The notes: generated from the letters alone by a model not told the origin. A stretch of DNA of 44,738 nt from Ministeria vibrans ATCC 50519 (GCA_943704425.1 CALSCP010001415.1:1-44738), one strand, 5' to 3'. Counted from the stretch's first letter, positions 4,720-36,723 are shown. Numbers and translations are program-made.

Positions 4720-4751
<32 letters not shown>

Positions 4752-5213: not shown

Positions 5214-5247
<34 letters not shown>

Positions 5248-10167: not shown

Positions 10168-10334
10168 GTTCGTATTGTTGGCGAAACCAGCCCCACGTCT
10201 GTCAAAGGGTAAAGTCTCAGGATTCAAGTCAGCCAACGCTTGTAGACGAGCAAATCAAAAGGTTTTGATTAATTATGAAGGAGTGAACGAGTTGCGAGTG
10301 AGAAATTCGTTTAATTGATAATCACAATTCAATC

Positions 10335-12412: not shown

Positions 12413-12418
12413 GTAGGG

Positions 12419-12530
<112 letters not shown>

Positions 12531-12660
12531 GGGAGAGAAACAAGTGATAGAGAAAGGAGAAAGAAACAAAGTGAAAGAGAGAGCAAAGTGAGAAATTGAG
12601 AGAGAAGGGGAAGAGACGAGAGTGGGTGGGAAAGTTCAACATTGAAAGGGACGCTGTCTT

Positions 12661-13304: not shown

Positions 13305-13601
13305 CGTCTCAAAAAGAAAGATGGGTGGGGTCACAGTGGGCGGACTGGGCCAGCTGTTATGTAAAACGCAAAGGTAGAAAAACGAATATTAATTATTTTA
13401 TATTCGACTTCTTTTTGATGAAGAGTCAAGTTCATTCATGGGTTATGTGCGGCACTTAAACAATATTGATTTCGCCCGGAACAAAGCTCATCGGCACTCT
13501 ATGCTCGAAAACAAACACAGCTTAGGTCAGTCCTGTCGCTCAACTATACATGTATGAATAACGAATGTGATTGATTGGGTATGAATTCATCGCTTCATTA
13601 G

Positions 13602-15167
13602 TTATTCGAGGGGTTCAGGAGCCACTGACTTGGTGTCACCGGTGGGTGTGACGTAGGCAGCAGTGAGACCGCCGTCGACGGCGAAATCAGTGCCGGTGAC
13701 GTACGACGATTCGTCACTCGCCAGAAACAGAGCGCCCTTTGCAATCTCAATCGCCTGACCTACAGAGAGAAAGAGAAAGAAAGACAGAAAGAGATAGAGA
13801 GAGGGAAACAAAGTAATGGAGGAACAAAGTTTTGGAGAAACAAAGTGATGGAGGAACAAAGTGATGGAGAAACAAAGTGATGGAGAAACAAATGGAAGAG
13901 AAACACAAATAGAGAAAGTTCAGAAGAGCGAGTAAGTGAGTGACTCAGTCGCACCAAAACGGCCCATTGGGACGTGCACGAGACGACGCTGCTTCTTCTC
14001 CTCGGTGTCGAGGAAGTCCATGAGAAGAGGGGTCTGGAGGGGTCCCGGGCAGATTGAGTTGAAGCGGATGTTCTCGCGCGCATATTGGACAGCCATTTCA
14101 CGACTACAAACGGAGCACCAGAGCGAATAAAAAAAACGGCTCTCTGTTAAATAAATGTGTGGTTACGTCAATGCAAGAACACCTCCCTTTGAAGCAGTGT
14201 CTACAACACAAAAACACGAGTCAGTATCCTCTCTCTCTCTCTCTCTCTCTCTCTGTCAGTCTGTTCTTCTCACAGGCGCACTGGGACGTTGCTGCACCCA
14301 AAATACCCACAAACGACGCTGTGTTGATGACACTGCCTCCGCCGGCCCGCTGCATCGCCGGAACAGCATATCGGCAGCCCAACCACACTCCCTGGTGGGA
14401 TTCGTTTGCGGTGAGTCACATTGCATACAATATCACCACTACCTTACTTTGAGGTTGATGTTCATTGTGAGGTCCCAAATGCGCTCTTCCGTCTCGCTGA
14501 TACCGCCATCCTACAGTCCGAAATATGTTGGCTCGACTCTCAGTCTATCTTTGTGTAGCTTACGGCCGGATGCATAATTCCCGCGTTGTTGAAGATGATA
14601 TTGAGTTTGCCTGTGAAGAAGGGCAAAAGTGGGTTTAGTTTCGTCTTCTTCAATGTGTTGCTGTGTGTGTGGGGGGGGGCGCCTACCAAACTCCTTCTCT
14701 GCGGTAGCCACCATGTTCTCAGCATCGGCTGCCTTGCTCACGTCCGCGTGCACGTAGACAGCGCGAGGCCCCTCTTTGGCATTGATCGAGGCAATCGTTG
14801 CCTGTCCCGCCTACACCACACAGCGAGGAGAAAACACGCAGCGGTGGGTCAGATGCGCGTGTACAGCCCATAATGGTGGGTCCAAGGCGGTGAATGGAGA
14901 AGGAGGTGGACATTTCGTAGCGGATGGATGAGATGCACTTTCTGTCGTACTTCGTCATTCACATCGGCACCCACCACATGTGCGCCTTCCTGTGCGAACA
15001 GCAAGCATGCTTGCTTGCCGATACCGCTGCAACAGAGACCCACGAAATGAACCGTGATGAGAAGGAGACAGGGGATATTTATCAAAAGTGTATCGACGAT
15101 TTGGCTGTACACACACACACCTGCCGGCTCCCGTGATGATTGCGACCTTTCCATCGAGACGTCCCAT
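13602..15167 (-). CDS. Classical short-chain dehydrogenase/reductase (FabG-like), complete, multi-exon
   Basis: Contains TGAGSGIG, NNAGI, the catalytic YTASK (in a small exon near 14177-14210), [10 protein letters not shown] and [13 protein letters not shown]...VDGG, all spliced in frame. Confidence 0.92.
13803..13895. repeat. Intronic minisatellite, ~16-bp unit GA[A/G]AACAAAGTGATG, 5-6 copies
   Basis: Tandem copies are visible in the last SDR intron. Confidence 0.85.
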
Positions 15168-15266
15168 GACTGTATATAACTAGAGGTTCAAATAAACTTA
15201 TAATTATTTTGAAAATTGAAGGGTTTGAATTTTGATCAGTCAAAACGAAAAATGTGTGTATTTCGT

Positions 15267-16066
15267 TTAGCACTGGCCGCAGTTGTCAATGACAATCTTC
15301 TGGGAAGTCTTGCCAGACTCGGAGCCGTAGCCCTCAATCTACAGGAACAAAAAAAGAAAAGTGAATGAGTGAGAGATGGCGATGAAATGGGGTCGTGTAC
15401 CTTCTTGACGATGTCCATGCCCTCGACGACCTGGCCGAAGACGACGTGCTTGCCGTCGAGCCACGCAGTCTTGACGGTGCAGAGGAAGAACTGCGAGCCG
15501 TTGGTGTTGGGGCCAGCTGTAAGACAAACGGAGAGGCGAAGTGATAAGAGAGAGGGAAATGCAGCGTGATTAGAGTGAAAAGAGAGAGGAGAACAAAGTG
15601 ATGGAGAGAGAGAAAAGGAGAAAGAAAGAAAGAGGATAAGTCAAGATGATAATTAAAATGAACAGAAGAGTGTTTCATACCGTTAGCCATCTGAAAGTGT
15701 GCAACAGAAAATGAAAAGAGAGAGAGCGAGAGACAACATGTTAGGAAATACTACTGTTTTCTTGTGTGGAAGTAAGGGCGTACGGAGAGGATTCCGGGGC
15801 CGGTGTGCTTGAGAGTGAAGTTCTCGTCAGCGAACTTCTCGCCGTAGATGGACTTGCCACCTGCAAAGGACAACAACAACAAACAACCAGAACGACAAGG
15901 TATGAGCCAATGCGATGGAGTGCTTTGTGTGTGTGTGTGTGTGTACCAGTGCCGTTGTGGCGGGTGAAGTCGCCACCCTGGCACATGAAGTTGGTGATGA
16001 CACGGTGGAACGAGCAGCCCTTGTAGCCGAAGCCCTTCTCGCCGGTGCAGAGAGCGCGGAAGTTCT
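15267..16066 (-). CDS. PPIA: Cyclophilin A-type peptidyl-prolyl isomerase, lacking its N-terminal exon(s)
   Basis: [55 protein letters not shown]...GILS|MAN|[11 protein letters not shown]...[12 protein letters not shown]...IVIDNCGQC*. It includes a 10-nt exon at 15681-15690. No VFFD...PKTA segment was found upstream. Confidence 0.92.
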
Positions 16067-16487
16067 CTACGAACACACAAACGAGTGAGTGAGTCAAAAA
16101 AAAAAAAAAAAAAAAAAGATGAAAGACAGTGAACGATCGCGACAAGGGACTGGCGAGTTGAACGGGTGTGTAGAGTGCAGCGTATGCAGAGGATACGCAG
16201 CAGAAGCAGAGATGGGCAGGGTGAGCTGTGGCGAGGAGAGCAGAGAAGAGGACTTTTCGGGAAACGAACATTATGTTTTAACAGACAGTTGAAACAGCAG
16301 CAAGAGACGCATCGAACGGTGCAGCTCGAGCGAGGGCCGAAAAAACAGTCGTGTTGACAAAGTGAAGGGAGTGCGAGGGAGCAAGGGGCAGCGAGAGCGA
16401 CGAGAGACCTCAAAGACAGAATTCGCTTCGACGAAAAAAAAAAAAAAAAAAAAAAAAAAAACGAGAACGAAACGAAAACAAACTCAC

Positions 16488-16664
16488 CTGCAAAAGCATC
16501 GCGTTGGAAGCAGCTGCACGCTTCATCGACTTCACATAGGCTCGTTCAGACTCCACCATCATGTCAATTGATTCTGTCATAAAGCGCAACACTTGACCGC
16601 CCTCGCCAAGACGCCGGCACGTCGCCGCATACCCCGAGACCGACAGGTCGCTGAACGACGACAT
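16488..16664 (-). CDS. First exon of a probable F-BAR (FCH) domain protein; remainder absent
   Basis: [49 protein letters not shown] resembles the FCH pattern F.D...GY..L..R...G...E..Y.K.L. It ends at a GTGAGT donor. Confidence 0.6.
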
Positions 16665-17000
16665 TGGGGTGTCGCTTTGCAAGAAGACCCGATACTTAAT
16701 TATTTGTGATTGAATTTTGATTTTTGAAAATTGAAAGTACATCATTTACATTGACAGAACAGAACCGAACACGAATAGACAGACAACTATTGTGCTTCCG
16801 CCCATACATACCGTCATGGGCTACTGAATACAGAGTACTCCTACTTACTAGTCACTACTGAGTGCAAAGTAGTGACGGGAGCACTGACTCACGCAAATAT
16901 AATCGACTCCATCAATCAGTCATTCACTTCCCTCTCTCTTTACATCTCATGAGAAAGAATCAACTTCAAAATCCCATCAATTTTCTTTGATTTTTCTGTG

Positions 17001-20000
17001 ATGCTCTCCCTCCTACTGGTACTCCCTGCCTTGGCCTTGGCGTCGGCCCTGCAGGCGGGGACGCACAGAGAGAGAAGAGTTCACATGTTTGAACCAGACG
17101 AAGTGTACACGTACGCCTTCCACGGACAGGTACGCCACCCCCCGCCATGTGCATCCTGCCTCTCCCTTGCCCCTCTCCCGTCCGATTTCCTTCGATATCT
17201 GTCGCAAATTTAAAAAAAAGAAAAAAAAGAAGGAGGAAAAAAAGAAATCTTTCAAGAAAATCTAAATCTAAAGTGGTTCCGAATAGACCACATTGGCGAC
17301 GGGCTCAGCGTCCGCGACGCATTCTGGCATGGACGTGCGGTGTGTAGTCGACTGTCAGGCGGCGAGCGCGTCGGACGACCGCCTTGTCGTCCATTTTCAC
17401 GCGCGCAATGTGACGGTGCTCGAGTGGGACGGCCAAACCGCAGCCTTCCTGCCTTCGTCGATGTCGCCCTTTTACGACGCCTCCCTCAGCCGCCACCCCT
17501 TTTCAGCGGCCTTCGACCACGCCGGGAACATCTCCAGCGTCTGGCTGGCGCCCGAAGACGACGTTTGGGTGGCCAACCTCAAGCGCTCCTTTCTGTCAGC
17601 ACTGCACGTTCATCTGCTCGACGGCGATCTCTTCACATCGATGCACGCCGACCTCACCGGGACGTGCCGCGCGAGGCACTCGGTACGTCGTCGTGACGGA
17701 CAGGATGCCCTTGAGATCTCGCGTGTACGCGACCACTCCGATTGCGAATCGCGTGCGCTCCATCACAACATGCAGCACCCTTCGCACTTGACGCGCGTGC
17801 AACAAGACCTCTCGTCCAGTACCGACTCGCTCCACGTCCTCAACACCACGACACGTCTCGTGATGTCCGCCTCGCACTCCGAGTCGCATATTTACACGGG
17901 TCTCGGCGCCTCGCGCGTGTCTCATGCTGCATCACGCACGTCCCTCTCGCTCATGAGTAGCTCTTCTTCGCAGCACCGCCCCGTCATCAGCGTCCAACGT
18001 GAACACCTTGTGCTCACCACGCTTGCCTACGAGCACCCGGCCAAGTCGCTCGACGCAGCGTCAAGCGACGACGCCGAACACCTCGCCGCTGTGCGTCTCT
18101 CCATCCTTGCGCTCGTCCACAGCAACGCCTCGTCGCTCACCCCCGCCATCGAGTTGCTCCAACAGCACCCGGTCGTTCTCTCGTTGCTCGTCGACGACCT
18201 GCACAACCGCACGGCGCGCGGTCGTCTTGTAGACGTCATCACCGCCGTTGGCTCCAGTGACTCTCACCAGTTTGTGTGCAAGTATGTCCTCGACAACGTC
18301 CACATGCCTGTCGACGTGCGTCTGCGTGTTCTCATGAACACCGCCTACCTGCCACACCCGAGTCCCGCCATGTTCCGCGATGTTGCCCGCCTTGCCAGTG
18401 CCGCCACGGGCGCCGATACTCTCGCCGACAACGCCTTGCTTGCCTTCGCCTCCATGGTCTACGCCCAGCGCCAGGCCAACCCGGACCTCATGAAGCAGCC
18501 ACTGGCACCTCTCACCCGCGCCATCCTTGAACCAGTCGCTCGCACCCTCAAAGATTCCGCGTCCATCTCGCTCAACCGCAACCTCGAGCAACTTTACATA
18601 TCGACGCTCGGCAATGCGGGTCTCGTCGACTACATCGACTCGCTCCTCGCCGTCATCCTGCGCCCCACTATCCCATCTCCCGCCCTGCTCCATACCATGA
18701 GCGGCCATCAGGACGCACGCGTCTCCGCCATTCGCGCCCTGCGCCACATGCGTCCATTGCCCTCTATCGCCCGCAGTGCTCTCATCGTCATCTACTTTGG
18801 TCCGCACCTCAATGACAACAACAACGACATGAAGAAGGCGCAGGCTCAGCCGGACTCCGATGCCGTGCGCATCGCTGCCTTTCGTGCCCTCATGGACTCC
18901 AACGAGGACCTCTACTCGTCCGAAGTGACGCGTCTCGTGCAGTCGCTTGCTCATGAGTCCTCCGTCGAAGTAGGCTCCTACGTCCTCTCCCACTTCAAGT
19001 CGCTCGCCGCAAGTGCCACCGACGCCTCCCTTGCTCGCCACGTCCGCGGCATTCTCTCCGACATGCTCTCCTTCTCCGCATCTGTTTCCCTCTACGGCAT
19101 CGAACTTAACCTGGGCTTCTCCAAGTCCAAAGAGTGGCTTTTCCTGGGTAACACGGAGTTTGGCGCGTCCATTGGCTTCGACCTCGTCAACGAGGCGGCC
19201 GTCTTCATTCCCCGCAGCGGTCATGTGCGCTTCGACGCCGAAATCCGCAACGTCGGCTACCTTCGTGCCTACGCCTTCAAGAAACTGTACAACCTCGTCG
19301 AGGTGGGCTTCACCGTTGAGGGTCTCGAGTTTGAATTTGGCGGCATTGGCAATGGCGCGCGTCGTCGCGACGCCCACGACGGCAATGACATCACCGACAG
19401 CGAAGAGGACAACGTCGAACACCCCGCAGACGACGTCGAAGACGATCTTCTCTCCCTTGCAGACGACCCAAATGCCGTGCCTTACCACATCCACGAGCAG
19501 GCGGGTCACATTGAGTTTTACTCGCTCGAAGCGTACGCCGCCTTTGACAACGACACTCCCACCGATCAGGAAAAGGACCGCCAGACGCGCTGTACCCCGT
19601 CAGCGTCGGCCACATACGCGTGGGTCACCGCCCCGTGGGGCTGTTGCTCCAAAAAGTGCATGCCAGGCGGCAAGCAGACTCGCTCAGTCAAGTGCGCCTC
19701 GTACGTCGGCACCACCGTTGAGTGTGCCAATGTCGCCGCCGTCAAGTGCGCCGCCGTCGCCATGCCTGCTTCCGAGCGCACCTGCAACACCAATTTGCCC
19801 TGTCCGGTTGCCGGAAGCGTCGGCGAAATGGCCTGGTCCATGGCACCCACCTGTGAGACGTACAAGGGCACGCTCGGCCTCAGCAAGCAACTGCTCGAAG
19901 AGCTCAGCTGTATGCATCCGGGCAAACTCAAGAATGCCCTTGAAATTCCCGAAATCTGTGCCACATCAGGCGCCTTCCCGTGGGTCCAGGACAAGACCTT

Positions 20001-23000
20001 TGACGAACTGAAGGCGTCCGTCGAGGGCCAGACCAAATTCTACCAGATCAACTCGGCCATTCGCTCCATTGCGCAGCAGTACGTCCTCTACAAGTACCGT
20101 ATCTTTACCAAGGGCACCAACGGCACCTGCTACAAGTGTCGCCAGTCCAACATTGTCGGGACGCCTGGCAACAGTAACCACCAGAGTGGCGGTGCCATTG
20201 ATTTTGCTCAAAACTCGCGAGAGCGCTTCAAGACGGTCATGAACAGCAAATGGTCGCGCTACTCGGATCGTCATCCGGGCAGGGACAAACCCCACTACGA
20301 CCGTTGGCCCACAAGCGACCTTGTCTCGTTCAAGGCCGACTCCATTCGTGCATTCCAGCGTCTTCACAATCGCAACTGCGCCCCTCAGCCCAGCTGCAAG
20401 ATTGCCGAGACGGGCGTGTGGGTGTGGGATGGTGAACTCGATCGGGCTCTCTTTGATGCGCCTCGCAACGGTTACTCCGGCGGTGCCTCTTGCTCGACAC
20501 CACTGCCAGGCGCCAACGAACCCCCAAGCTGCTGCAGCAAAGACCTCAAGAAGAAGGGTCGCTGCATTGCGTCCTCCACCTGCAAGAACAACGGGGGCGC
20601 AACGCTGTCGGGCCTCTGTCCTGGTATCTCCAAGTGTTGCGTTGACGAGCCCGTCGATGGTGTCGAGGTTACCATTAGCAGCAAGAAGGAAGGCTCGGAA
20701 GATCTGTTCCCGGTGCCCACCGTCATGACCGAGCAGCAGGCCGCTCAGTCGCAAGAGACCGAGGACAAGACCGTGTCGGTGCCCGTCCCCAAAGATCTCT
20801 CTCCGACCAACCTTGACTCGCTTCGCAACATCGGCTCCTTCCTTCGTCCCAACCGCATTCGCATTCGCCTCACCAAGAAACCGACGGCAGCAGTGACTCT
20901 TACGCTGACGCTCTCGTGCTGCGAGCCCGACGGCCTTGGCAGCTGCAATCAAGTCACCAACAACAACGTTTATGGCTTTTTCGATGCGGGCGCCGCCACC
21001 ATCTACCCGTCGCAGCTTAATTTTGCTGCCAACTCGGACACCTACAAGGTCTATCAGTCGGTGGGCGTTTCCAACAACAGCCCGCAACCGCAGTTCTGCT
21101 CCGTTTCCATTCAAAACTATTCCCCAGCCGGTCCCTACGCCGGCTACCACATCACTTTTGATCTCACCCTGCCCGCCCTCAGTGTATGTCGCGCCTACAA
21201 CGAACAGGAAGTGGACTCCACGTCGGGCGGCGGCACTGGCCGTCGTCGTGGTGCCAGCACCGACGAGCAGGATCCCATTACCGTCGAGGTCAACGAGCAA
21301 GACGCGGTGCACGACGAGTCGCATCACGAACGCCACCAGCACACCCAGAGCCGTCGCAGCATTGATGGCGACGATGCGTCGCTCTCGTGCAACTGTCCCG
21401 AGGCCGCTCCCGAAGAGTGCCAGTCGGGCCTGTGTGCCGTCAACAGCGCCTTCTGTTCCTTCATCAATAGCCAGGAGCGTGCCACGAGCAACATGGACGG
21501 CACCGACGACAAGACGTGCGCTGTTCCCTCCGGCTCGACCGGCGCCCCCTCGTGCAACGTCTTTGGCAGCATGCCCTGGCTGTCGGACGGTCAGCAATTC
21601 AACTTGGCCGCAACGTGTCACGCATTGCTGCGCAGCGACGCCGACGAGAACCTGTTCAAGTGCGTGCAGAACAATCTGATTTCGGGGCTGCAGGCCGTCG
21701 ATTCGTCGTACCAGTCGGCTTACGCGGCTCTCAAGGGCACCGTGGTGCCCGGCAATGCTTTTTCGGCCGACGAGTACCACCGCAAGCTAGTGAACGGCGG
21801 CGGTGGTTTGCCGTCGCCGTCGCAGGCCGAAACTGTCTTCTCCATCTACAAGACGGCTTACGAGACGTGCTGTTGCGCCGAGACGCCTGGCCAGTACCTT
21901 GCCTGGATCGCATCGACGCCCGTCAAGATGGAGCCGGCCACAGTCAACTACAATCACCAGCTGTACGGCACATGCGAGAACCGTGCCACCGTGAGCGGCG
22001 ACAAACCCGGCATCACCGGCTATTTCTTCATCAATCTGCTTGGACAAGAGTGGAAGCGTTGGTATGTCTTTGGACAGGACCCCAACGATACGGGCGACCG
22101 TCGTCGTCGTCGTCAGCAGGTCATGAGCGAGTTTGACGAGCGCGGCGAGGCACTCGTCGCTTCGTTGCCGTCGAATCACCCAGCGCGTCTCGACCATCGC
22201 GCGCGTCGTGGCTTCATCAAGGACAACCTTGCGGATCTCATTGCCAACCTGGATCCGGCTCAGTACTGTTTGAGCTACCCTGCCATCAAGATTATGGACC
22301 TGTCGGTGCCTTTCTTTCCCCCGTACGTTCAGTATGTGCCTCTCATTCTGGGTGTTGCCCTGGAAATTCGCATTAGTGCCGGAGCCTACTTCCGCATCTA
22401 TGCCAATGCCGAGGTGTGTCCATTGGCGCTGTCCGCAGGCGGCTCTATTGGTCCCGACCTGGGTGCCGAGCTTGTGGGCTCCGTCGCGCTCAACGCCTTT
22501 GTAATTCGCGCGGGTATTACATTGAGCATCGAGTTGCTGCAGAACTCGCTGCGTTTCAGCGCGGACCTCGCGTTCGCCTCGAAACCCTTCCAGGTGTGCT
22601 TTGATTTGACGCGCGAGCAAAATCCCCTCACCTTCAAGTTCGAAGCGTTTGTTCAGTTGCGCACCAAAATCAAGTGGTGCAAGGTCTGGGGCGTGCCCAT
22701 TCCTTGTGGTCTCACCTGGGGCAAGCGCCATGCCATCACTCTTGGCTCAGGCTCACTCTCCTCCAATCATGTTATTGACGTCATGTGGACCAACTGCAAG
22801 GCGGACGTGAACACGCGACCCGTCGCGACTCCCGCCCAACTGACCGTTGGCGAAGACGTGCTGTACACGGGTACACTGGCTGGTACTGACTCGGACGGTG
22901 ACAGCCTCACCTTTGCCATTCACACCGAAGCGGACGGACTCGTGGTGCTTACCGACGAAACAAGCGGAACCTTCACGTACCGCAGTGCCAAGCACCGTGC

Positions 23001-26000
23001 GGGCACGGACACGTTTGGGTTCACGGCGAACGACGGCGAGGAAGAGAGCGAACCCGCCTTCATTACCATTACTGTCACTCCCATTTCAGACCCACCTGCC
23101 GTCACCGTCGAGCCCATGACCGGCACCCAGGGATCGTCGGTCAACCTCGACATTGAGGTGGAACTTGTTGACATTGACGGCTCCGAACAACTCTCGGTGG
23201 CCCTGTGTGACTGCTCGGCGTCGCTCGACGGCAGCGCCTGCTCCTCCACCGGCGCTTGCTGCCTCGAGATTCCCACGCGTCGTCTCGACTACCCTTCGGC
23301 CGGCATATCCTCATTGCTCAGTGGCGGCACATCACTCGTGCCCAAAAGCCTTCTGAAGACCACGAGTGGCTCGGGTTCTGGCTCGTCGCTGTTTCACTCG
23401 CGCGAGCGAGCCACTGGACCTGCCTCGCGTATTCATTGTGAAGCGCGCGGCAGTCAGGGCGAGTGTCAGAAACGCGCAGTGGCGCTCGGCGCCACCTTCC
23501 GCTCGTTTGCCGCCGGTCAGACGTGCGCCCAAGTGTCTTGCTCGCTGAGCACGCCCGGAACGCTTGGCGCCTGCTGCCTTAACAATGGGTTTAGTGGCAC
23601 TTGTCACGCACAGGCGAGTGCGGCCGACTGCCAGACGCGCGCCACGCTTCTTGGCTGGACCTTTGGCTCGTTCAATCCGTCAGCGACGTGCAGCGACAGC
23701 GCCAATGTGTGTCCCTCCATCATGACCGCCGGTGGCACGTGCTGCCTCCAGCAGGGCACCACGGCCATGTGCGAGCACCACATCTCCGAGAGTGTGTGTC
23801 GTGACCGTGCCACTCGCTCCGACAATGTCGTCTTTCGCTCGTTCACCTCGGGCCTCAACTGCCCCACCACTAGCTGTCCTGTGCTTATCACGCCGTGTCT
23901 CACGTCACCCTGCCGCAACGGCGCCACATGCACCGAAACGTCGACGACCACGTACACGTGTACCTGTGTGCCCGGCTTCCAGGGTACCGACTGTGAGCAG
24001 GACGTTGACGAGTGCGCATCGCAGCCGTGTGCCAATGGTGCCGTGTGTATTGATGGCGTCGACAACTTTGCGTGTCGCTGTGTGGCTGCTAATGGATTTG
24101 GCGGTGAGCTTTGCGACGCGCCCATTGACGAGTGTCTGTCATCGCCGTGCGAGAATGGTGGCACCTGTGTTGACAAGGTTGCTTCCTATGAGTGCACCTG
24201 CCTCGCGACCTTCACCGGCGACTCGTGTCAGACTGACTACAATGCGTGTACGTTGGTGCCGTGCAAAAATGGCGCCGCCTGCGCCTCCGATCCAATCACT
24301 GGCTTTGTGTGCACCTGCGCCACCGGCTGGCTTGGCACCACATGTGAGCAGCCCGTCGACTATTGTGAGTCGTCGCCGTGTGTCAATGGGGGTGTGTGCT
24401 CGCTCAACACCGCCTCTGCGACACCCTTTGCACAGTGTACCTGTAGCGCCGGCTACAATGGCGATGCGTGCGAGACAAACATTGACGAGTGTGCCGCTGC
24501 CCCCTGCCAAAATGGAGGCACGTGCCGTGACGGCGTTGCCTCGTTTGTGTGCGACTGTGTGCCTGGCTACCAGGGCACCGTGTGCGCCACAAACATTGAC
24601 GATTGTTCGCCGAATCCATGCTCGGTCAATGGCGTTTGCCACGACCTGGTTAACGGCTACCGTTGCGACTGTACCCCTGGCTACACGGATCCGCTCTGCG
24701 CGACCAACACGGACGAGTGTGCTACGTCGCCTTGCCAGAATGGCGGTGTGTGTGTCGACGGCGTGAACGAGTACGCCTGCTCGTGTGCCTACGGCTGGAT
24801 TGGCGTCAACTGTGACACGCTCGAGGATGAATGCATCTCGTCGCCCTGCCTCAACGGTGGTCAGTGTGTCAACGCCGACAACAAGTATGAGTGTCGTTGT
24901 GCGACCGGCTATGCGGGTGTTCAGTGCGCAACGGACATTGACGAGTGCGCCTCGATGCCGTGCCTTAATGGGGCCGCCTGCGTGAACGGCGTGGGTGGCT
25001 TTGCATGCACCTGCCTGCCCGGCTACCATGGAACGACGTGTGCCACGAACACGGACGAGTGCGCGATCGCACCATGCAAGAATGGCGCCGCCTGTGTCGA
25101 CGGCGTGAACATGTTCACGTGCACATGCGTCGCCGGCTACACCGGTCAGGTGTGCGATGTCAACATCGACGAGTGTGCCGCGGTCACCTGTCAGAATGGT
25201 GGTACGTGTCAGGATGGCGTCAACGACTTCACCTGTGTGTGCGAGCCGGGCTATGCGGGCGATCTATGCGACGTGAACATTGACGAGTGTGCCTCGACTC
25301 CTTGCATCAATGGAGGCGTGTGCATCGACGGTGTCGATGCCTTCTCGTGTACCTGTGTTGTCGGTTATGCAGGCGCACAGTGCGAGAGCAACATCAACGA
25401 GTGTGCTTCGACGCCGTGCGTCAATGGCATGTGCGTTGACGCGATAAATGCCTTTTCGTGCACCTGTGATGCCGGCTATGCTGGCACCTTGTGCGACACT
25501 GACATTGACGAGTGTACTACCACCGGGAATGGGTCGCCGTGCCTCAATGGAGGTGTGTGTAGCGACCTGGTGAACGGTTACAAGTGCACGTGTGCCGCCG
25601 GCTATGCGGGAGCGACGTGTGCCGAGAACATTGACGAGTGTGCCGCCAACCCGTGTTTGAATGGTGGCGTGTGCACCGACGGTATTAACCTGTACACGTG
25701 TCAGTGTGCCGTTGGCTATGAGGGCTCTGACTGCGACACCAACACGGACGATTGTGCGGCTGACCCCTGCCTCAATGGGGCCACGTGTGTCGATCGTCTC
25801 AATGCCTTTACGTGCAGCTGTGCCGCCGGCTACCGCGGTACACTTTGTGCCGAAAACATCGACGAGTGCGCACCCATCGCGTGTCAGAACGGTGGCACGT
25901 GTGTAGACGGTGTTGACCAGTTTCAGTGTGTCTGTGCGAACGGCTGGCACGGTGTGCTGTGCGAGACGGACACCGACGAGTGTGCCAGCAGTCCATGCCC

Positions 26001-29000
26001 GCGTGGCGAGTGCATCGCCGCTGTTGGTGCCTTTAGCTGTCGCTGTCCCACCGGCTATGGCGGCACCCTGTGCGAGACGGACATTAACGAGTGCGAGACG
26101 AACCCCTGCCTCCACGGAGGCTCGTGTACCGACACAGTGGGCGCGGCCGTGTGTACCTGTGTTGAGGGCTATGGCGGCGACACGTGCGCCAACAACATTG
26201 ATGACTGCGCTCAGAATCCTTGCGTGCATGGCACATGCTTTGACCGTGTTAACGCCTTTGAGTGCGTTTGTACCGCCGGCTACGAGGGTGCCACTTGCTC
26301 AGTGGACACCAACGAGTGCGCGAGCAGTCCATGCGACAACACTGGCGTCTGCAGCGACAAAGTCAACGGCTATGTGTGCGCGTGCCCTGCGGGCTTTGCC
26401 GGCACACACTGTTCACAAAACATTGATGACTGTGTTCCAAATCCCTGTCAGAACTCGGGCGTGTGTGCCGATGGTGCGAACGCTTTTACATGTACTTGCG
26501 CCGCCGGCTATGAGGGCGACACGTGCGCCGACAACATCAACGATTGTGCGACGCAGCCTTGCAAGAATGGCGCCGTCTGTCACGATGGTCTTCTCACCTT
26601 CACGTGTACCTGTGCTGCCGGCTACACCGGCGACATTTGCAACGTTAACATTGACGATTGCGCCGCGGACCCCTGCCAGCACGGCGGTACCTGTGTCGAC
26701 GCTGTGAACGGTTTCACGTGTACCTGTGTCGCCGGCTATGCCGGTGCTACATGCTCCCACGATGTCGATGAGTGTGCGGCGCAGCCGTGCCTCTCTGGCG
26801 GCACCTGTGTTGACGAAATCAACGGCTACTCGTGCACGTGCGCGACGGGTTACGCGGGTGCCACGTGCGCCGAGAACATTGACGACTGTGCGCAGCATGG
26901 TTGTGCCAACGGCGCCACGTGCGTGGACCATGTGAATCGCTACTCATGCAACTGCAAGCCGGGCTATGCGGGCACACTGTGCGAGATCAACGTGAGCGAC
27001 TGTTCGCCGTCACCCTGTGTCAATGGTGGCGTGTGCAAAGACGGCGTCAACTCGTACGTGTGCATTTGCCCTGTAGGCTACGCGGGCGCAACGTGCGCGA
27101 CGAATGTGAATGAGTGTGCGAGCAGCCCGTGCCACAATGGCGGTGTCTGTGTCGACGAGGTGGGCGCGTATGGCTGCATTTGCGCCGACGGCTATGGCGG
27201 CAACATGTGCCAAGTGAACATTGACGAGTGCGCCTCGGAGCCGTGCCTCAATGGTGCCACCTGTGTGGATGCGGTGGACGGGTTCACATGCAAATGTGCC
27301 GCGGGCTTCGCCGGCGATATGTGTGCGGGCAACATTGACGAGTGCGCGTCGACACCCTGCCAAAATGGAGGTGTGTGCACTGATCTTGTTAATGCCTTTT
27401 CATGCGCCTGTGCCAGTGGCTTCACCGACACAACGTGCAGCACGAACATTGATGACTGTAAGGCCGAATCGTGCCACAACGGTGGTACATGCGTTGATTT
27501 GGTTGACGCAGTGCGATGCACGTGTGCGGCTGGCTGGCAGGGCATCGCCTGCAACGAGCAGGTCCTTGAATGTGAGTCAAACCCGTGCGTCAATGGCGCG
27601 TGCGTAGACGCCACCAATGGCTACATTTGTAAGTGTGAGACTGGCTGGGCGGGAGTCGCGTGCGACTTTAACATCGACGACTGTGCTGGTTCACCGTGTC
27701 TCAACGGCGGTGTCTGTTCCGACGCCGTCAACGCCTTCACGTGTGCGTGTCCGGCTGGCTTTGCTGGCGCGACTTGCGGCACCAACATTGACGAGTGTGC
27801 TCCGGCGCCCTGTCTTAATGGGGGTCTTTGTGCCGACGCGATCAATGGTTTCAAGTGTACGTGCGCCACGGGCTTCTCGGGCACCACGTGCTCGGTTAAC
27901 AACGACGATTGCTCTCCGCAGCCGTGCAAGAATGGCGCGACCTGCACCGACCTGGTCAACAGTTACCGTTGTACCTGTGTGCCGGGCTACGCGGGCACTC
28001 TGTGCGACACGAACATTAACGACTGTTCGCCCAACCCATGTGCCAATGGGGCCTCCTGCGTCGACCAAGTCAACGCCTACAAGTGCCTGTGCCCCCCCGG
28101 ATTTGTAGGTACCACCTGTGCTACCAATGTGGACGATTGCGCCGGCAACCCCTGTGGCTCGTACGGCTCCTGCTCCGACGGTGTCAATGGCTTCACGTGC
28201 ACATGCGAAACCGGCTTTAGCGGGACCACCTGTCAGACGAACAACAACGACTGTGTCCACCATGGTTGCAGCAACGGCGCCACCTGCGTCGACGGGGTGA
28301 ACACATACACCTGCTCATGCACCACCGGCTACTCGGGGACCTACTGCCAGACCAACTCCAACGATTGCTTTAGCGGCGCCTGCCTCCACGGCGGCACGTG
28401 TGTCGACGGTCTAAACACCTACACTTGTAAATGTCTTGCGGGCTACTCGGGTTCGCGTTGCGCCACCAACGACAACGATTGCTCCCCAAACCCATGCGCC
28501 AACGGCGGTGCCTGCCAGGACGGCGTCAACTCGTACACATGCAGCTGTGCGACCGGCTGGACGGGAACTCAGTGTACGGTAGCCGTCAACTACTGCCAGT
28601 GCTCCCCGTGCCGAAATGGCGCCACCTGCACTTCACACTCGTCGGGCTACACTTGCGCGTGCGCACCCGGCTACTCCGGCTCGTCTTGCACGGTGAACAC
28701 CAACGAGTGCGCATCTGCGCCCTGCCAAAACCTCGGCACCTGTGTCGACGGTATCAATGGCTACACCTGCACCTGTCTCACGGGCTTTACTGGCTCGACG
28801 TGCGGCACTAATATCAACGACTGCGCTTGCAACCCGTGCCAGAATGGTGGCACATGCACGGACTTGATTAATGGCTTTACGTGCTCGTGTGCCACGGGAT
28901 ACGCCGGCTCGACCTGCTCCTTTGACATCAACGAGTGCGCTTGCAATCCGTGTCTTAACGGCGGCGCTTGTGTCAATAATGTGGGCTACTACACGTGTAC

Positions 29001-32000
29001 GTGTGCGTCGGGCTATACTGGCTCTCAGTGCGGCGAGACAATTGTCAATTCGTGTGCTTCAAGTCCGTGCAAAAACGGAGCCGGGTGCGTGCCAATCTCG
29101 CCGAGCGCTTACAAGTGTATCTGCGTCTCGCCCTATACGGGCACCACCTGCACTGAAGTAAATCGTCCGTGTTGCACACGATCGTCAGCTGGCGTCGGAG
29201 CCTGCTCGCTCCATACGAGTGCGTCGGCCTGCTTCTCGTATGCATCCTCAGCCAGTCGCACTTACGTCTCCTATTACTCGTCCTCCACCAGTTGCAGCTC
29301 TGTCATTTGTTCCGATGTATCCTCCACCAAATACGTTTGTTGCAACAGTGGTCAGCTGCGTCGCGACGCGCTCATTGTGCCCATTGAAGACGGCGCATGT
29401 ACACTGGAGACTGCTCAAGACTGTGTTGGCATTTCGATTCTCGGTGAGACCCGGTGCCTCTCCGACTCCTGCACACGTATACTTCAGCGTCGCGCCATCT
29501 CGTCCATTCCTGCCAAGACATTCCTCTCGTCGGGTGTTCTTGCGCCTCCCACATCATCTGCGACCTCCGTTTGCGGCTGCAACGGTCAAGTGCAGTTTCC
29601 CAGTGACGAGTGGAAGATTACCAAGAGTGGTGTGAAGCTGACGGATTCGGCGATGCAGTCGTTGTCGCTTGCCGACCTTGCTTCGCTTGAGGTGGTTCCC
29701 GACCCGGATTTTTCGGGCAAATTTGCCTTCCAGGTGGTAGGTCTGTCGCAGGAAAAGGAAGCGGGTATTCCCGCGGCCATTTCCAACGTGCCTGCCGGCA
29801 TGAACATCCTGCCAGTGAACGAAGCGCCTACCGTGAGTGCCACGCTCAGCTCGGTCAGCGTGGCCCTCGGTGACTTTGTCGCCTTGGGCTCGTTTACCGT
29901 GGCCGACTCGGACCTGGGCGGTGACGGCCTGCTTGTTGTCAACGTCGAGGCGTCCTTTGGTGACGCTCACCTGTGGGTTTCGACCTCGACAGGCGTCACC
30001 TTCCTGGGTGTGCCACCGGCCGACGTTGAAGAGCGCGGTGTGAGCGCCTATGTGGAGGAGACAGCGGATGCGTCGATCGAGAATGTCTACGTGACGTTGC
30101 GTGACGCTCTCTCTGTGGGCGTTGTCAACGGCAACAGCCGACTGCGCATGATGGGTACGCCCATTGCACTCAATGCGGCACTCTCGTCGCTTCAGTACGA
30201 GTCGGGCGCGGCTTTTGTAGGCGCCGACACGGTCACCCTGAGCGTGTCGGACCTGTTTGCGGCGGATCTTTTTGAAGTGGAAAGTGTCGGACTGTCCGCG
30301 TCCACCACCATTGCTGTCACTGTCACGGGTTCCCTTCCTGTGGGCCACATTGTGACGTCGGGCGAACAATCTGAATTCCAAGTGTCGTCGAGCGGTGCCG
30401 ACGATTCGTTGCAGAACCTCTTTGCGCTCTCGGTGCTGACCGAGACCAGTGACACCGAAGTTGAGCTTGAGTTCAGCTTCACAGACGCGCCCGATGCACT
30501 GACTGCCCCCACTGCCGCGACCGTGAGCAGCGCAAACTTGGGCACCTACGTAGTCGTATCACAGTCACCGACCAAATACCGCGTGCGTGGTACTGCCTCG
30601 TCCATTCTCTACATGCTCTCATTGTCGACGGTCGACGCGAGCAAGTCGACGACACACTGTCGCTGGCGCATGCTTGCGAAGCTCTACGTGAGCCCGACGG
30701 GTGCGCTCCTCGACACGCACGCCCTGTGGTACACCAAGAGTGGCTGTACGCCCACGGCGACGCTCACCATGGCACCGACACAGACGGTGCTGGCAACCAC
30801 CAGCGAGGGCACAGGCGTCACCATCACCAGTGCCAACTGGCAGCTGACGAGCACGGGCGCCAAGGTGCTGGTGTCGCTCGAGTCGGACGATGTCCACGTG
30901 ATATTTAGCAGTGTCGCATCGGGCGTGACCGTGTTCACCGCCAAGAGCTCGCAGGATCACTCGCTTATTGGCGGCACCACTAGTCTGCAGTTGTTGGGCT
31001 CGGCGGCTGCCGTCAGCAGCACACTCAACGCCATTGAGGTGCAGCCTCAGCTGCGTTTCAGCGGTATTGCCTCGATTCACGTGCGTGCTGTGGCGCTTGG
31101 TGCTCATGAAGAGCCCGTGGAGATGGTGAGTATGGATGCGGTGGCGCTGGTCATGTCCTCCCTTGTGGCCACCAATCTGATTGAGGTGACGGTGACCGAC
31201 GTGAACCACGAGCCGTCGTTGCTCTATCCATCGTACATGACGGTGAGCGAGCACGAATCGAACGAGGTGCACTCGTTTGGTGTGTTCGACGACGATCTTC
31301 TTGCCGTGGGCGGTTCGCTCGTTGTCCTTGTCGAAGTGACCGCGGGAACCTTGTCGCTGGCGGACCCCGCCATCGTGCAGATGATTCAGGGCACCGGCAC
31401 TGGCGATGCTGTCATGTCGTTTACGGGCTCTCTGCAGGCTGTGAATACAGCGCTATTTTCGCTCGTGTACAATGCTGGTGCGTGCGCCGAGGTGTCCTGT
31501 GGCGCCACCGACGAGTTCTTGCACATTCAAGTGACCGACTTGCCGTCGACGCCCAACCAAGCGTCGACGTCCATTGACGGCGTGACGCGTCTTGACATTT
31601 TGTGTGTGGCCAACGCGCCGCTTGTGACTGCCCCTGCAGCACTTGGGTGGGAGGACACCGACGTTGCCGTGTCGGTGTCGGTGACCGCTGTAGACACCAA
31701 GGAGCTTGTGTACGTGCACATGCGACTGCCCGAGCACGCGTCGTTGACCAATGGCGCCGACTTGGGCTACGACGGACTGTGGGAGCTGCAACTCAACGAG
31801 CTTGCGGGTCTCAAGGTACGACCTCTGCCCAACTACAATGGCCTCATCAATATTACTGTGATTGGCATTTCGATTGAGCCGTCGGTTGACGAGCGCGCCA
31901 CGACGGAGCGCACGCTCATTGTCGATGTGCGCGCCGTCAACGATGCGCCCACCATCAAAGTGCCGCCTTCGCCGCGTGTCTTTGAGGACACCTTGTCGCT

Positions 32001-35000
32001 CTTGAAGCCCATTGTGGTGCACGACGTGGACCACCAGTGGGGCGAGGGCGGCTCGTACACGGTTGTGGTGGGCATCACGCAGAATGGCAAGCTCAGTGTG
32101 AGCCAGACGCGTCTGCCGACGCTGCCTACGGGCGTCACGGTGACCAACGACGACTCAGCCTGCGTGCAGGTGTCGGGTCCACTTGAGGGTGTGAACACGG
32201 TCCTGAAGAACCTGATGTTCTTGGGCACAACCAATTTCAACGGACAAACTGTCCTGTCGGTGCTGGTTGACGACCAGGGCAGCTATGGTGTCATGTCGAC
32301 CACAACGGCTCCCACCACGACCACGGGGTTCAAGCCGCTGGTGTCGCCGCTGGCGCGTCGCCGTCGTCGTTCACTCTCCTCCTTTAGCGGCATCTTCAAG
32401 GACCTCAACAACATCAACAACATCAACGTCCATCGCCGCGGCCTCACCACCATCAATCCCAACTGTCCCCTGCCGGCAGGTGTCACGGGTCTCACTGCGT
32501 CCGCCTCAACCAACATTCACGTGCTGCCGGTGAACGACGAGCCCGTTATTCATCTTGCGGCCACCGCTTTGTGTTTCCAGTGCACGCCGGTTATCGACAG
32601 CTTTGCGCCGGCTGAGGAGCTTCTCACGGCTCTCTCAGGTTTGTCCGTGTCCGACGTGGACACGGTCGCGGCCACGGTGACACTCAGTGTACAAAATGGC
32701 TCGCTCTTCTTTGGCAACGACGTCGCGACGGTCGCCGATGTGCTTGACGAAGTGCCCATCACAACAGGCGAGTTTTTTGATCGTCCTGCTGGACTCACTG
32801 AGCTCGAGAGCTCGCAATTCCTGACGCGTCGACGACGACGCACCACCACCAGCAGTGGCAGTGGTGGTGGCGGCGGCGGCGGTAGTTCGATTTTGGCGCC
32901 ACAGTTGTTGCGGCGACGATCGCAGGAGGAGGTGCAAGAGAAGTTGGCCGAAGATTTGTCGGTGGACGAGCTGGATCTTGTTTCGGAGATCGCGGCGGAG
33001 ACGAAGAAGCAGAACCGAGTGACGCGTTTCTTTACGCGTCGTCGTCGTCGCACGGTACAACCGGCGGTGAGTGCGGTTAAGGTGACCTTTGAGTATGGCA
33101 GCAACAACACCCAAGTGATGCGCTTTGTGGGACCCATTTCGAGAATCAACACGATGATGGCGGGCCTCATGTACCGCGGCGTGGAAGATTTCAATGGCGA
33201 TGGTGAGCTCGTGGTGAGTGTGCAGGACTCGCCTGTGGACGGCACACCTTCCGAGTTTACGTCGCGCACCTTTGCCTTTGCCGTCACGCCCGTCAACGAT
33301 GCACCCAATGTGGCGTCGTTTGCTGCGCGATCGCGCATTCGCGTGGGTGGCTCGTCGACTGTGTCGTTTGCCGCCTTTGACGATGGCTCCGAGCTGGGCG
33401 ACGAGAACACCGACGTGGAAGCGGTGCTCACGACGGCGCACGGCACGCTTGCGTTGCCAGCCAGTGCATCGTCGGCGGCGGGTGTGACTGTGTCGGCGAC
33501 GACGGGCGCTGCGATTACGCTGCGTGGCCGCGCGAACGTAGTGAACGAACTCATGACGGGCATGACGTTCACGGCGGACGCGTCGATGGTAGGCACGTCG
33601 TTGAGCACCAGCGAGTGTGTGGTCTTTGCCTCCATTGATGACAATGGCAACCACGGTGCGGGCGGCCCCATGTCGGCCGACGCCAACGTGACCATGGTCG
33701 TGCTGGGCTGTGCGGGCACCGTGACGCGACGCAACCTCAAGGGGTTTAACACGGCGTGGCGCTACGAAAAGATCCCGTCGGCGCAGGTGGTGCAGGAAAC
33801 GCTGACGTCGCGCACGACGAGCATTCGCTTCTTTCCCTCCGAAGATGTGGCACCTTCGAAGATTCTGCGCACACTGCAGACAACCACCGGAGGCTTTGGG
33901 AAGCTGGGCGCTCGCGAGTGTCCCGAGAACACGCAGGCGTACCTCAACACGAACACGGAGGGCGATCTGTCGCTGCGCAGCACCTTCTATGTACCCGAAG
34001 AGACGCTGTCAGTGTACGTGCGCGTAGTGACGGATGGCGAGGCGGCCGTGTACCTGAGCGACGAGTTTCTCTTTACGCATGTGTGGGACGGCTCGGGCTG
34101 TACGACCGAGACAATCTTTGAGGTGCCTTTCTGGGAGTTTGGCGCGAATGCAATTGCGGTGCGCGTGTACAACCACACGTACATTGATGTGGCAGTTGAA
34201 GCGGATGTGTGTGGTGCAGTGCGCCCCCCCTCGGGCTGTACCGACGACCGCGACTGCTGGCCCGGTGCCAAGTGTGTCGGCTCGCCCGGCCAGTGCAAGG
34301 TGAGCGTGTGTGGCGATGGAATTGTTGACTTTGACGAGTTCTGCGACGATGGCAACCGCATTGACGACGATGACTGCGACAACGAGTGTGGTGTGTCACG
34401 TCTGACGTGCAAGCCGCACAAAGTGACCGCGTCAGATCTGACGGATGCGGCGGATCTGGCGGCGCTTGCGGCGGGCACCGGCAACGGCTTCATCAATGGC
34501 TTTGACCGGGACGGCCTGCAGTGCACGGGCTCGTGCAATGGCGGCAGTGGCATGGGCTGCTACGCACAGTGGAGCAACGCCGGCAAGACATTGCAGACGT
34601 GCTTGTGCACGGACGGTGCGCAGGTGCAGGCGCCCGGCTGTGCCGTGCGCATCAACAAGCTGCGTGCAGGCAGCAATGGCGAGACGGACGGGTATGATTC
34701 GGCGGGTCGCTACTGCGGCGGCACGTGTTCGGTGACGGGCGCGAGCTGCGAGGGCAAGTGGGCAGACAGCGGCACGACACTTGTGTCGTGTGGCTGCAAG
34801 ACACCCGTGCAAAGTGGCTGTCGTCTGGACAATCGCAACAACATGTGTGTGGGGCAGTGTACGGTTACGGGTGCGACGTGTCGCGCCGTGACCCGTATCA
34901 ATGGCCGTGTGACCGGCTGCACGTGTGCGCCAGTGGTTGCTGGCGATTCGTGCAAGCTAGAGCATCGTCCCAATGTGTTTAGTTTGCGTCGTCTTGCGCT

Positions 35001-36723
35001 GCCCTTTGTACAGCTGGAGCCCTACTGCTCGGGCACGTGTCAGGCGACGGGTCGCTCGTGCACCCTCCAGACTGTATTCGGACGCAGTTCGTGTGCATGC
35101 AGCGGAGCGGTGCCGCCCGAGCCCACAGTGTGCACAGCGGATTATGTGCGCAACGAGTGCACGGGAACCTGTGTGGTGAATGGCGTGAAGCGCTCGTGCG
35201 TGGGCGACTATGTGAACCGCAAACTGCGAGGGTGTGGGTGTGGCACGTTTGACACGGAGTGTACGGTGTCGGGCGAGACCTGCTCGGGCACGTGCAATGG
35301 ACAGGCATGTGTGGCGACGACGACAACCAAGCCGGGCACTCTGTTCAGTCGACCGCGTACGGTGCTGACGGGTTGCCAGTGTGCGGCGGTGACGCCGTCG
35401 CCCACGGGCTGCGTGGCCAACTACTTTAAGCAGACGTGCACAGGCTCGGTGGGCACGCCACCGCGCAAGTGCGTTGGTCGCTACCTCGGCTTTCGTCTGG
35501 TGGGCTGCGAGGCAACGCCCGAGGTGATCACCTCATCAGGCTGCTATGTGCGCAACAAGATCTGCTATGGCGTGTGCTCGGCGACGGGCTCGCGCTGTTT
35601 CCCGAGCACCTACAACGGTGTCATGACCAAGTGTTCGTGCGCCGAAGTACCCGGTACCGACTGTGGCACGGGCGGATTTTTGCGACGCGGCAAGATGTGC
35701 ATTGCGCAGCCTAAGCCCCGTGAAGTCTTGGGGGTGCCTGAGCCATCGGTGATCACCATGGAGGAGACCGTGTTGGGCCTGGATGATTCACTCGAGGTGA
35801 GCATTCCACCGACACAGCTGACACGCGACCGATCCAACGGAGTCATGTATGTGATTGAGCGGGACCCACTGCCGACGTGTACCAGTCGTTTCCGGGGTGA
35901 CTGTGTTGAGGCGCCCGAGGAGCTCAGTGAGTTTATTGCGGACCCTCGATCGACGTCGACGACGCGCGCCGAGGATGAGCGTCCCGAGGACGTCGAGAGC
36001 ATCGAGCAGGTGTTTACCGTGACGGCGTTTGAGTCGCCGCGTCTGCGACATCAGACCGAAGCGCTTGAGTTGGCGTCGGTTGAGAATGAGGAAACGGACG
36101 ATGCGGAGCCGGTGCGCGTGCGAACGAACCATCTGATTGAGCCATTGGAGCTGAACGTGCCCATTCCGTCGACGGTTGACCCTGAGCGAGTGAATGTGCT
36201 CATGCTGGACCTGTCTGTGCCGACGCGGCCCAAGCGCCGCTCGTGGTTGCCCGTCTCGAGCTCGTGCAGTGCGGCGAAGCGCAAGCGAACGTTGTTTGGC
36301 CGACGTCGACTGCGGGTGAACACGTGTCACTTGACGCAGTTTGCGGTGGTGGTGGCGCAGTGTCCAAGCACGTGTCCGTCGTGCGTGTGCTCAGCTGGGG
36401 TGTGTGAGTGTCCAGCGTCGTCGTCGTCCGTGGCGGCCATTGGCGGTGGAGTGGGCGCTGCGCTGCTCATTGCACTGCTTGCGCTTGTCATTGTCATTGT
36501 GGTGGTGCGTCGTCGTCGCCAGTCGAGTCGCTCGGCGCTTCTGGGGTCGGCGCTGTCGCTGCGTCGCCACGACTCCGTGGTGAGCACCATATCGGAGGTG
36601 GTCGAGGAAGAGTATCAGGCGGTGGGCATGTCGGACAATAGCATGATGATTATGGACGAGTCGTCGACGCTCGCCTATGCTCCTTTGGGCACGGCTGCCC
36701 TTCGTTACTCTGAAGACATTTGA
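17001..36723 (+). CDS. Giant (~6521 aa) type I membrane protein: signal peptide, vitellogenin/LLTP-like module, TSP1, M15 Zn-peptidase, peptidoglycan-binding domain, bacterial-type Ig/cadherin-like repeats, 46 EGF repeats, Cys-rich repeats, GPS-like motif, single TM and short tail
   Basis: Exon 1 at 17001-17129 (MLSLLLVLPALALASA...FEPDEVYTYAF) splices in phase 0 to exon 2 at 17287-36723, which is an uninterrupted ORF. Domains were recognised from motifs detailed in the findings. Confidence 0.93.
23893..29157 (+). repeat. Tandem array of 46 Notch-type (mostly calcium-binding) EGF repeats
   Basis: Counted by hand; consensus NIDEC.S.PC.NGG.C.D.VN.F.C.C..GY.G..C, about 38 aa per unit. Confidence 0.95.

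Follow-up and report, generated by a model that had tools for sequence, protein, structure and literature searches.

A giant gene on the (+) strand of the DNA stretch analysed here, 44,738 nucleotides from Ministeria vibrans ATCC 50519 (GCA_943704425.1 CALSCP010001415.1:1-44738; hereafter the window), encodes a product of 6,521 amino acids that is predicted to be an anchored type I membrane glycoprotein and that carries at its N-terminus the module typical of large lipid transfer proteins (LLTP; for background see PMC1783640). All its parts belong to known families; what is new is their combination, together with a protease slot that follows the LLTP head and holds a thrombospondin type 1 repeat (TSP1) plus an M15 zinc peptidase domain here, and an astacin in a paralog of the same genome. 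We read the protein, with a confidence that is about evenly balanced, as one that would bind and cut bacterial envelopes at the cell surface or in the phagosome.

Two exons make up the gene: 17001-17129 contributes 43 codons and 17287-36723 contributes 6,478 codons to the 6,521 residues. Exon 1, read directly, begins with ATG and encodes a hydrophobic stretch resembling a signal peptide, followed by the first LLTP residues (YTYAF); of the signal peptide claimed in an initial annotation of this DNA, it is this hydrophobic start, judged by eye, that we can recognise. The intron that follows (17130-17286, 157 nt, GT..AG) is the only one, as exon 2 runs through its 6,478 codons to the stop without further interruption. 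Family and profile searches were run on exon 2, exon 1 (43 residues) being read by eye, and the residue numbers below follow exon 2, whose first codon lies at nucleotide 17287; adding 43 converts them to the full protein. Public sequencing runs were compared with the window stretch 16900-22899 (6,000 nt). An RNA contig of 8,278 nt from an independent study of 2025, filed under another organism name (run X6), begins at 16985, 16 nt 5' of the ATG, joins 17129 to 17287 with removal of exactly the predicted 157-nt GT..AG intron, and continues to 22899 through the LLTP, TSP1, M15 and following domains, with 2,520 nt more beyond the compared stretch. DNA contigs from a study of 2022 (run X3) are collinear with the window and retain the intron, and a polyA marine metatranscriptome (run X15) holds at least eight fragments with at least 99% identity to the gene; the runs containing its sequence are marine. 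We conclude that the gene is genuine and is transcribed and spliced, and that the joins between LLTP, TSP1 and M15 did not arise by chimeric assembly, because the RNA contig and the DNA contigs agree across them. Hence the size of about 6,521 residues given in the initial annotation is borne out across an RNA-supported intron, with continuity unbroken over 16985-22899, while for the 3' 11 kb of the gene the support comes from the uninterrupted frame and from homology to the paralog.

Could the gene still be an artefact, whether a chimeric assembly, a bacterial contaminant or a gene that is no longer alive? Such an explanation might appeal to the bacterial affinity of the M15 domain, the tandem-95 repeats and the myxobacterial cysteine repeat, to the fragmentation of the assembly (2,860 contigs) and to an RNA support that covers 16900-22899; it is nevertheless hardly credible, since RNA shows the removal of a spliceosomal intron, the RNA contig passes from the LLTP module to M15 and the following domains in agreement with the independent DNA contigs of 2022, the 19.4-kb frame has no break, the same genome encodes a collinear paralog and the genes on either side are eukaryotic, with introns of their own. 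An open frame of 6,478 codons cannot, moreover, arise by chance. Single-base differences from other runs of the same organism occur at window positions 19422, 20166, 21543 and 22739, and look like strain or allele variation.

The head of the protein is a Vitellogenin_N module (PF01347, beta-barrel plus helical domain; 17314-18996, (+) strand, residues 10-570), matched at E 1.2e-34 with 120.4 bits against a cut-off of 24 and spanning profile positions 24-589 of 590, so that the vitellogenin-N/LLTP-like region of the initial annotation is recovered far above threshold within residues 1-800. It is followed by a possible start of the LLTP open beta-sheet (Vit_open_b-sht; 19120-19335, (+), residues 612-683), a weak match at E 0.056 with 13 bits, under the cut-off of 23.7, and then by an acidic linker. 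Beyond the protease cassette, alignment with the paralog and with metagenome relatives delimits a mostly helical, unassigned domain with a TCCCAxTPGQY motif (21367-22086, (+)), which AlphaFold2 (AF2) models as a helical bundle of moderate confidence over residues ~1421-1530 only. Next comes a beta-rich domain ending in KIKWCKVWGVxxPCGLTWG (22204-22791, (+)) that may be the distal lipid-binding sheet of LLTPs; a match to MTP_lip_bd at residues 1729-1798 (E 7.5e-4, 19.4 bits, below the cut-off of 27), found in two of six relatives, lends weak support to this identity. The AF2 model of residues 1361-1850, built from a six-row alignment, is poor, with a predicted local distance difference test score (pLDDT) of 39, and an Atlas feature search with the same residues returned scores of 0.85, an uninformative level. 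The LLTP region found no match among PDB sequences with phmmer, and no vWD domain was found in the window protein. The KIKWCKVWG domain, with a Big_9 domain after it, also occurs on two short marine metagenome contigs.

LLTPs are regarded as soluble animal lipid carriers: yolk proteins, apoB and MTP. The window protein resembles vitellogenin, apoB, apolipophorin II/I and MTP in its Vitellogenin_N module, its presumptive signal peptide, its polybasic sites of convertase type and its weak open beta-sheet and MTP matches, and differs from them in having a predicted membrane anchor, ten times the length of MTP and a unicellular host. A cassette of ~590 residues with TSP1 and the zinc peptidase separates its N-terminal module from residues 1361-1845, and its similarity is remote to every LLTP in a library of 1.8 billion proteins, the best E being 2e-18, to metagenomic fragments. 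Nor does it have the build of a soluble protein, or of one confined to the lumen of the endoplasmic reticulum: a strong transmembrane helix at residues 6382-6407 is followed by RRRR and a tail of 71 residues, and the paralog has the same layout.

The cassette begins with the TSP1 repeat (19621-19794, (+), residues 779-836), which matches PF19030 (TSP1_ADAMTS) above cut-off at E 1.3e-6 with 29 bits. The M15/LAS zinc peptidase domain (19849-20511, (+)) comes next and belongs to a subfamily rich in Myxococcota; a VanY match at residues 904-980, an alignment of 81 sequences, a profile search of the PDB, AF2 and Foldseek all lead to the same assignment, so that both domains were correctly named in the initial annotation. 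The subfamily consensus of the 81 sequences includes NSALRT, SNHESGLAxD and DPVHFDY, and comparison with this alignment and with Ply500 indicates that the window protein keeps H965, D972, D1000, H1003 and the arginine of NSAIRS, which align with invariant or near-invariant columns of the relatives; the S, R, H, D, D and H of these columns are preserved. The catalytic set, that is zinc ligands, catalytic acid and arginine, is complete, and the peptidase looks intact. In the PDB, the M15 profile matches Ply500, LysB4, LdcB and VanXY (E 8e-7 to 2e-5); the core of the AF2 model has a pLDDT above 90, and the top Foldseek matches are all LAS proteins (LdcB, VanXYc, Ply500, VanY and VanX; probability 0.96-1.0, with a modest E of ~6e-3), Hedgehog-N ranking below all the peptidases. 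In comparison with the M15B/C LAS peptidases, namely VanY/VanXY, LdcB, the phage endolysins Ply500 and LysB4 and the secreted enzymes of Myxococcota, the domain shares SxHxxGxAxD, DxxH, the conserved arginine and the predicted fold, and differs in being embedded in a giant eukaryotic membrane protein. A short cysteine-rich knot without family match, read directly, lies 3' of the peptidase (20491-20643, (+)).

Where does this peptidase have its nearest relatives? Identity to Myxococcota members of the subfamily is 29-39% over ~220 residues, including the C-terminal AFQRL...N helices, and a scan of species-representative bacterial genomes with a seven-row M15 alignment gave 381 relatives, the best 80 of which are almost all from Myxococcota (Polyangiaceae, Kofleriaceae, Labilithrix, Haliangiales, Sandaracinaceae and Bradymonadales). 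The closest bacterial relatives of the domain, among these best 80 of 381, are almost entirely predatory Myxococcota; the one homolog that we checked sits in an ordinary bacterial gene neighbourhood. FastTree places the window domain in a small clade, with weak support of 0.79, together with a sponge (Oscarella) protein, a Paulinella transcript and metagenomic sequences. Two members of the subfamily have architectures of their own. A metagenomic protein of 803 residues (P0111) fuses the M15 domain to a phage-type lysozyme, which is consistent with a cell-wall-lytic role of the family, and a protein of 2,253 residues from Oscarella pearsei (P0087) combines a Trypsin domain, the M15 subfamily domain (residues 716-956), PLAT and a Hedgehog N-terminal domain, thus containing two LAS-fold domains.

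In the window's own genome (29.7 Mb, 2,860 contigs), Vitellogenin_N occurs at three loci and VanY at one. Among the three is a paralog of ~19.7 kb (contig C2840, ~10300-30000; loci L019, L021 and L022) that is collinear with the window protein, matching its residues 56-768 (25% identity, E 3e-47), 1361-1845 (28%, E 3e-64), 1856-1991 (35%), 4095-4349, 4483-5001 and 5259-6356 (E 2e-59). It has several introns, lacks the EGF array, TSP1 and M15, and ends in the same arrangement of CHLTxF, transmembrane helix and RRRR; a six-frame Pfam search of its contig detected no LysM. The ~590-residue cassette has no counterpart in the paralog, which carries at the corresponding position an astacin whose coding sequence is divided between two exons (E 4e-16 and 1.6e-8 in Pfam). 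The core conserved between the two proteins comprises the LLTP N-terminal part, the protease slot, the helical TCCCA domain, the beta-rich KIKWCKVWG domain, the tandem-95 region, a variable middle, a C-terminal module of ~2,200 residues, the GPS-like motif and the transmembrane helix. From these alignments, the two proteins belong to a small family of giant membrane proteins that share an LLTP head and a protease slot whose occupant can be exchanged. As the paralog has an astacin in the slot, the scaffold would be a general platform for presenting proteases rather than a device specific for peptidoglycan. The third Vitellogenin_N match (contig C1920, 37273-37755 (-), locus L003) is partial, with E 7e-8 over profile positions 432-580; the locus has no tblastn similarity to the window protein and may be an MTP-like gene.

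At its other end the window protein has a GPS-like motif, CHLTQFAVVV (36325-36354, (+), residue 6347), situated 25 residues before a single transmembrane helix (36430-36507, (+), residues 6382-6407) that a hydropathy scan identifies as strong and that is followed by RRRR. The motif contains the HL/T triad of GPS cleavage sites near the membrane and reads CHLTQF here and CHLTAF in the paralog; a tryptophan and a cysteine upstream of CHLTxF are also conserved between the two. This is the likeness to GAIN/GPS proteins such as adhesion G protein-coupled receptors and polycystin-1, from which the window protein differs by having one transmembrane helix instead of 7 or 11 and by the negative outcome of profile searches: Pfam GPS (PF01825) has no match in it, and a two-sequence juxtamembrane profile retrieved nothing from the PDB at E up to 10 that would indicate a GAIN fold. 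The initial annotation was right about the single helix and about the presence of a GPS-like motif kept in the paralog, but neither a Pfam GPS match nor, in the PDB profile search, a GAIN fold was detected around it. It was right also in assigning tyrosine motifs to the cytoplasmic tail, whose 71 residues (36508-36720, (+)) include YQAV, YAPL and YSED.

The long region between head and membrane is built from repeats. First come tandem-95 or bacterial cadherin-like domains (22804-23256, (+), residues ~1840-1990), for which we took a match to NF012211 or to PF17963, PF17803 or PF17892 as the criterion; Big_9 matches at E 2e-10, Cadherin_4 at E 1e-7 and tand_rpt_95 (NF012211) with a domain E of 6e-12, Cadherin_5 being matched too. 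Cysteine-rich repeats of CC...FRSF type, read directly (23254-23886, (+)), precede an array of 46 consecutive EGF-like repeats (23896-29151, (+)), mostly with a calcium-binding-type prefix; they match Pfam EGF, hEGF and EGF_CA, and a regular expression for six-cysteine patterns counts the 46 units at residues 2204-3955, exactly as first annotated. Thereafter follow ~1,350 residues of low-cysteine repeats (29584-33636, (+)) with VN(D/E)(A/E)P boundaries, apparently of divergent tandem-95 type given tand_rpt_95 matches at E 1.3e-7 and 1.7e-3, weak Cadherin_4 matches and the motifs, and conserved with the paralog. Further on lie a cysteine-rich acidic repeat (DUF4215/myxo_disulf_rpt; 34276-34389, (+), residues ~5664-5703), just under the cut-offs and present in the paralog, and about eight copies of an unassigned CxGxC...CxC cysteine repeat (34504-35676, (+), residues 5740-6130), similar to repeats of the paralog. 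These agree with the cysteine repeats of the initial annotation, whereas its Ig/cadherin-like repeats are cadherin-like in the bacterial tandem-95 sense, no Ig domain having been found. Stretches without family match of CC...FRSF/YVSY type lie on both sides of the EGF array, at 23254-23886 and 29152-29586.

What kind of organism makes such a protein? The genome contains T-box and integrin-beta genes and an HSP90 split into many exons by short introns, and no LHC gene was found in it; its HSP70, with only about 70-73% identity to animals, is too conserved a protein to identify the organism. Since T-box and integrin beta are present, LHC is absent and the runs are marine, these data point to a unicellular holozoan other than a choanoflagellate, and the host is probably a bacterivorous filasterean. 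A photosynthetic alga resembling Nannochloropsis is rejected as host, given the absence of LHC and the presence of T-box and integrin beta. The sequencing runs that contain the gene, with DNA and RNA of 2011, a study of 2022 that also covers a second organism and an RNA series of 2025, fit Ministeria vibrans. The genome of Ministeria vibrans was published in 2022 (PMC9492541), and the organism engulfs bacteria with its filopodia, aggregates and has been studied by RNA-seq (PMC13366479).

A role in the handling of bacteria fits this picture, because the nearest relatives of the M15 domain are from predatory Myxococcota and the host is probably bacterivorous. In the mechanism that we propose, the protein would be displayed on the cell surface or the filopodia and pass into the phagosome with captured bacteria; its LLTP head would bind lipids of the bacterial envelope, much as vitellogenins of animals attach to surface molecules of microbes; the M15 domain, we infer, would hydrolyse peptidoglycan stem peptides; and convertase cleavage at the RRRRR sites, possibly with autoproteolysis at HL/T, would free the head from the stalk or loosen it. 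The family as a whole would be a modular platform presenting proteases to prey. For vitellogenins, a part in innate defence against microbes is described (PMC4632452).

Several observations weigh against this proposal. The lipid cavity of the LLTP head is putative, as the open beta-sheet and MTP_lip_bd matches stay below their cut-offs and the AF2 model is poor. PG_binding_1 (PF01471) has no match in the window protein at E up to 1 and is present in only 4 of the 81 members of the M15 family; the separate peptidoglycan-binding domain of the initial annotation is, on the alignment, the C-terminal helices of the M15 subfamily's own domain with their AFQRL...N half motif. The enzymatic role of a LAS domain can be lost, Hedgehog being an example. 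Polybasic sites are few in the paralog, and its astacin is not a cell-wall enzyme, so that the common theme may be proteolysis in general. The GAIN fold went undetected in the profile searches, and the tyrosine motifs of the tail are not conserved in the paralog, which leaves inward signalling unsupported. What stands of the capture and processing system of the initial annotation is an expressed giant protein with an LLTP head, an intact-looking M15 peptidase and a long stalk; the separate peptidoglycan-binding domain and signalling to the cell interior are not supported, and nor is a GAIN fold.

The same stalk lends itself to another interpretation, in which the protein is an adhesion or aggregation receptor: the stalk would make contact with other cells or the substrate, the LLTP head would sense lipid or lipoprotein-like cues, and the M15 domain would be a non-catalytic binding or ligand module comparable to Hedgehog-N or a remodeller of the cell's own matrix. 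Metazoan adhesion proteins typically have EGF arrays and cadherin-like repeats along with a GPS-like motif and a single transmembrane helix, Hedgehog-N is among the lower Foldseek matches, the sponge protein joins this type of M15 with HH_signal, and the astacin of the paralog is of a matrix-processing enzyme type; moreover, filastereans aggregate, Capsaspora doing so in response to lipoproteins (PMC13366479). We regard this as a real if minor possibility, because the window domain keeps every catalytic LAS residue and has no match to HH_signal (PF01085) at E up to 1, and its nearest relatives are secreted bacterial enzymes. Its obvious substrate is bacterial, too, since to our knowledge holozoans make no peptidoglycan.

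The polybasic sites invite a further question: is the membrane anchor needed by the mature protein? The ectodomain has six R-x-K/R-R sites counting the juxtamembrane one, and four of them are RRRRR, namely a candidate convertase site at residue 1605 (22099-22113, (+)), aligned with RRR in the paralog, and those found by motif scan within the low-cysteine repeats at residues 5024, 5181 and 5251. The protein could then be a polyprotein precursor, anchored for sorting only, which convertases would cut into a soluble LLTP lipoprotein that transports or stores lipid, separate secreted enzymes and EGF fragments. The five sites besides the juxtamembrane one, the alignment at residue 1605 and the fact that insect and crustacean LLTPs are convertase-processed speak for such a precursor, which we consider decidedly improbable in view of the few polybasic sites of the paralog and of the position of the putative distal LLTP sheet, which lies 3' of residue 1605, so that a cut there would split the module.

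In line with the initial claim, searches of proteins and of the literature turned up no architecture comparable to that of the window protein. Of the 507 matches that phmmer returned for residues 1-1200 against 1.8 billion representative proteins, none lay below E 1e-30 and none matched both M15 and LLTP, but only one or the other; in the top 150, nearly all matches were restricted to residues ~850-1080, at ~35% identity. A whole-length search with residues 1-1150 found no protein of comparable length, within a sensitivity limited by its word filter, and one with residues 1361-1991 found only bacterial tandem-95 giants, on the cadherin-like part. In the literature, from which most subscription journals were outside our coverage, we found no membrane-bound, pre-metazoan or filasterean LLTP. 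The bacterial tandem-95 giant adhesins share with the window protein the repeat type and the giant size, with 30-43% identity over single repeats, and differ in that they lack LLTP, EGF and a eukaryotic transmembrane helix with tail, and in that matches to them cover only 12-26% of the region searched. Closer in general design are the Hedgling and Hedgehog-N giants of sponges, cnidarians and choanoflagellates, which likewise combine an N-terminal LAS fold with cadherin-like and EGF repeats in a very large type I protein; the window protein differs from these by a LAS domain of VanY type with full catalytic set and without HH_signal, by its tandem-95 units and its LLTP head, and by having no vWA, Ig or SH2 domain that we could find.

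In evolutionary terms, a close unicellular relative of animals has membrane-tethered LLTP heads borne on giant stalks, and two paralogs fill the protease slot in different ways. This would give a concrete and testable picture of the LLTP fold before yolk and lipoproteins. One scenario, speculative and rather unlikely, is that the LLTP fold was first, in unicellular holozoans, a membrane-tethered head recognising microbial envelopes, with a slot into which different zinc proteases were shuffled, an M15 domain of bacterial origin in the window protein and astacin in the paralog, and that the soluble yolk and lipoprotein carriers of animals, including the side functions by which they bind pathogens, are descendants of such prey-handling receptors. 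The anchored heads would also connect the microbe binding of vitellogenins with feeding on bacteria. The window gene is also a clear case of a Myxococcota-type bacterial cell-wall peptidase domain within a eukaryotic surface protein. Because the host can be cultured and its transcripts have been followed over time by RNA-seq with a defined prey bacterium, the idea is open to experiment.

Some features of the surrounding sequence remain to be mentioned. Long open frames at 2970-6410 (+) and 11129-12547 (+) have borderline matches to Myb-like and IQ-motif families, other long frames in the flanks having no family match. Upstream of the giant gene, on the opposite strand (15741-16271 (-)), there is an exon of cyclophilin type (Pro_isomerase, E 5e-11), with a 30-nt poly(A) tract at ~16434-16463 between the two. 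The giant gene has one intron in 19.7 kb; short introns divide its paralog, and likewise housekeeping genes like HSP90, into many exons, and the HSP90 gene itself (contig C1392, ~44400-46100, locus L012) is interrupted by a run of Ns.

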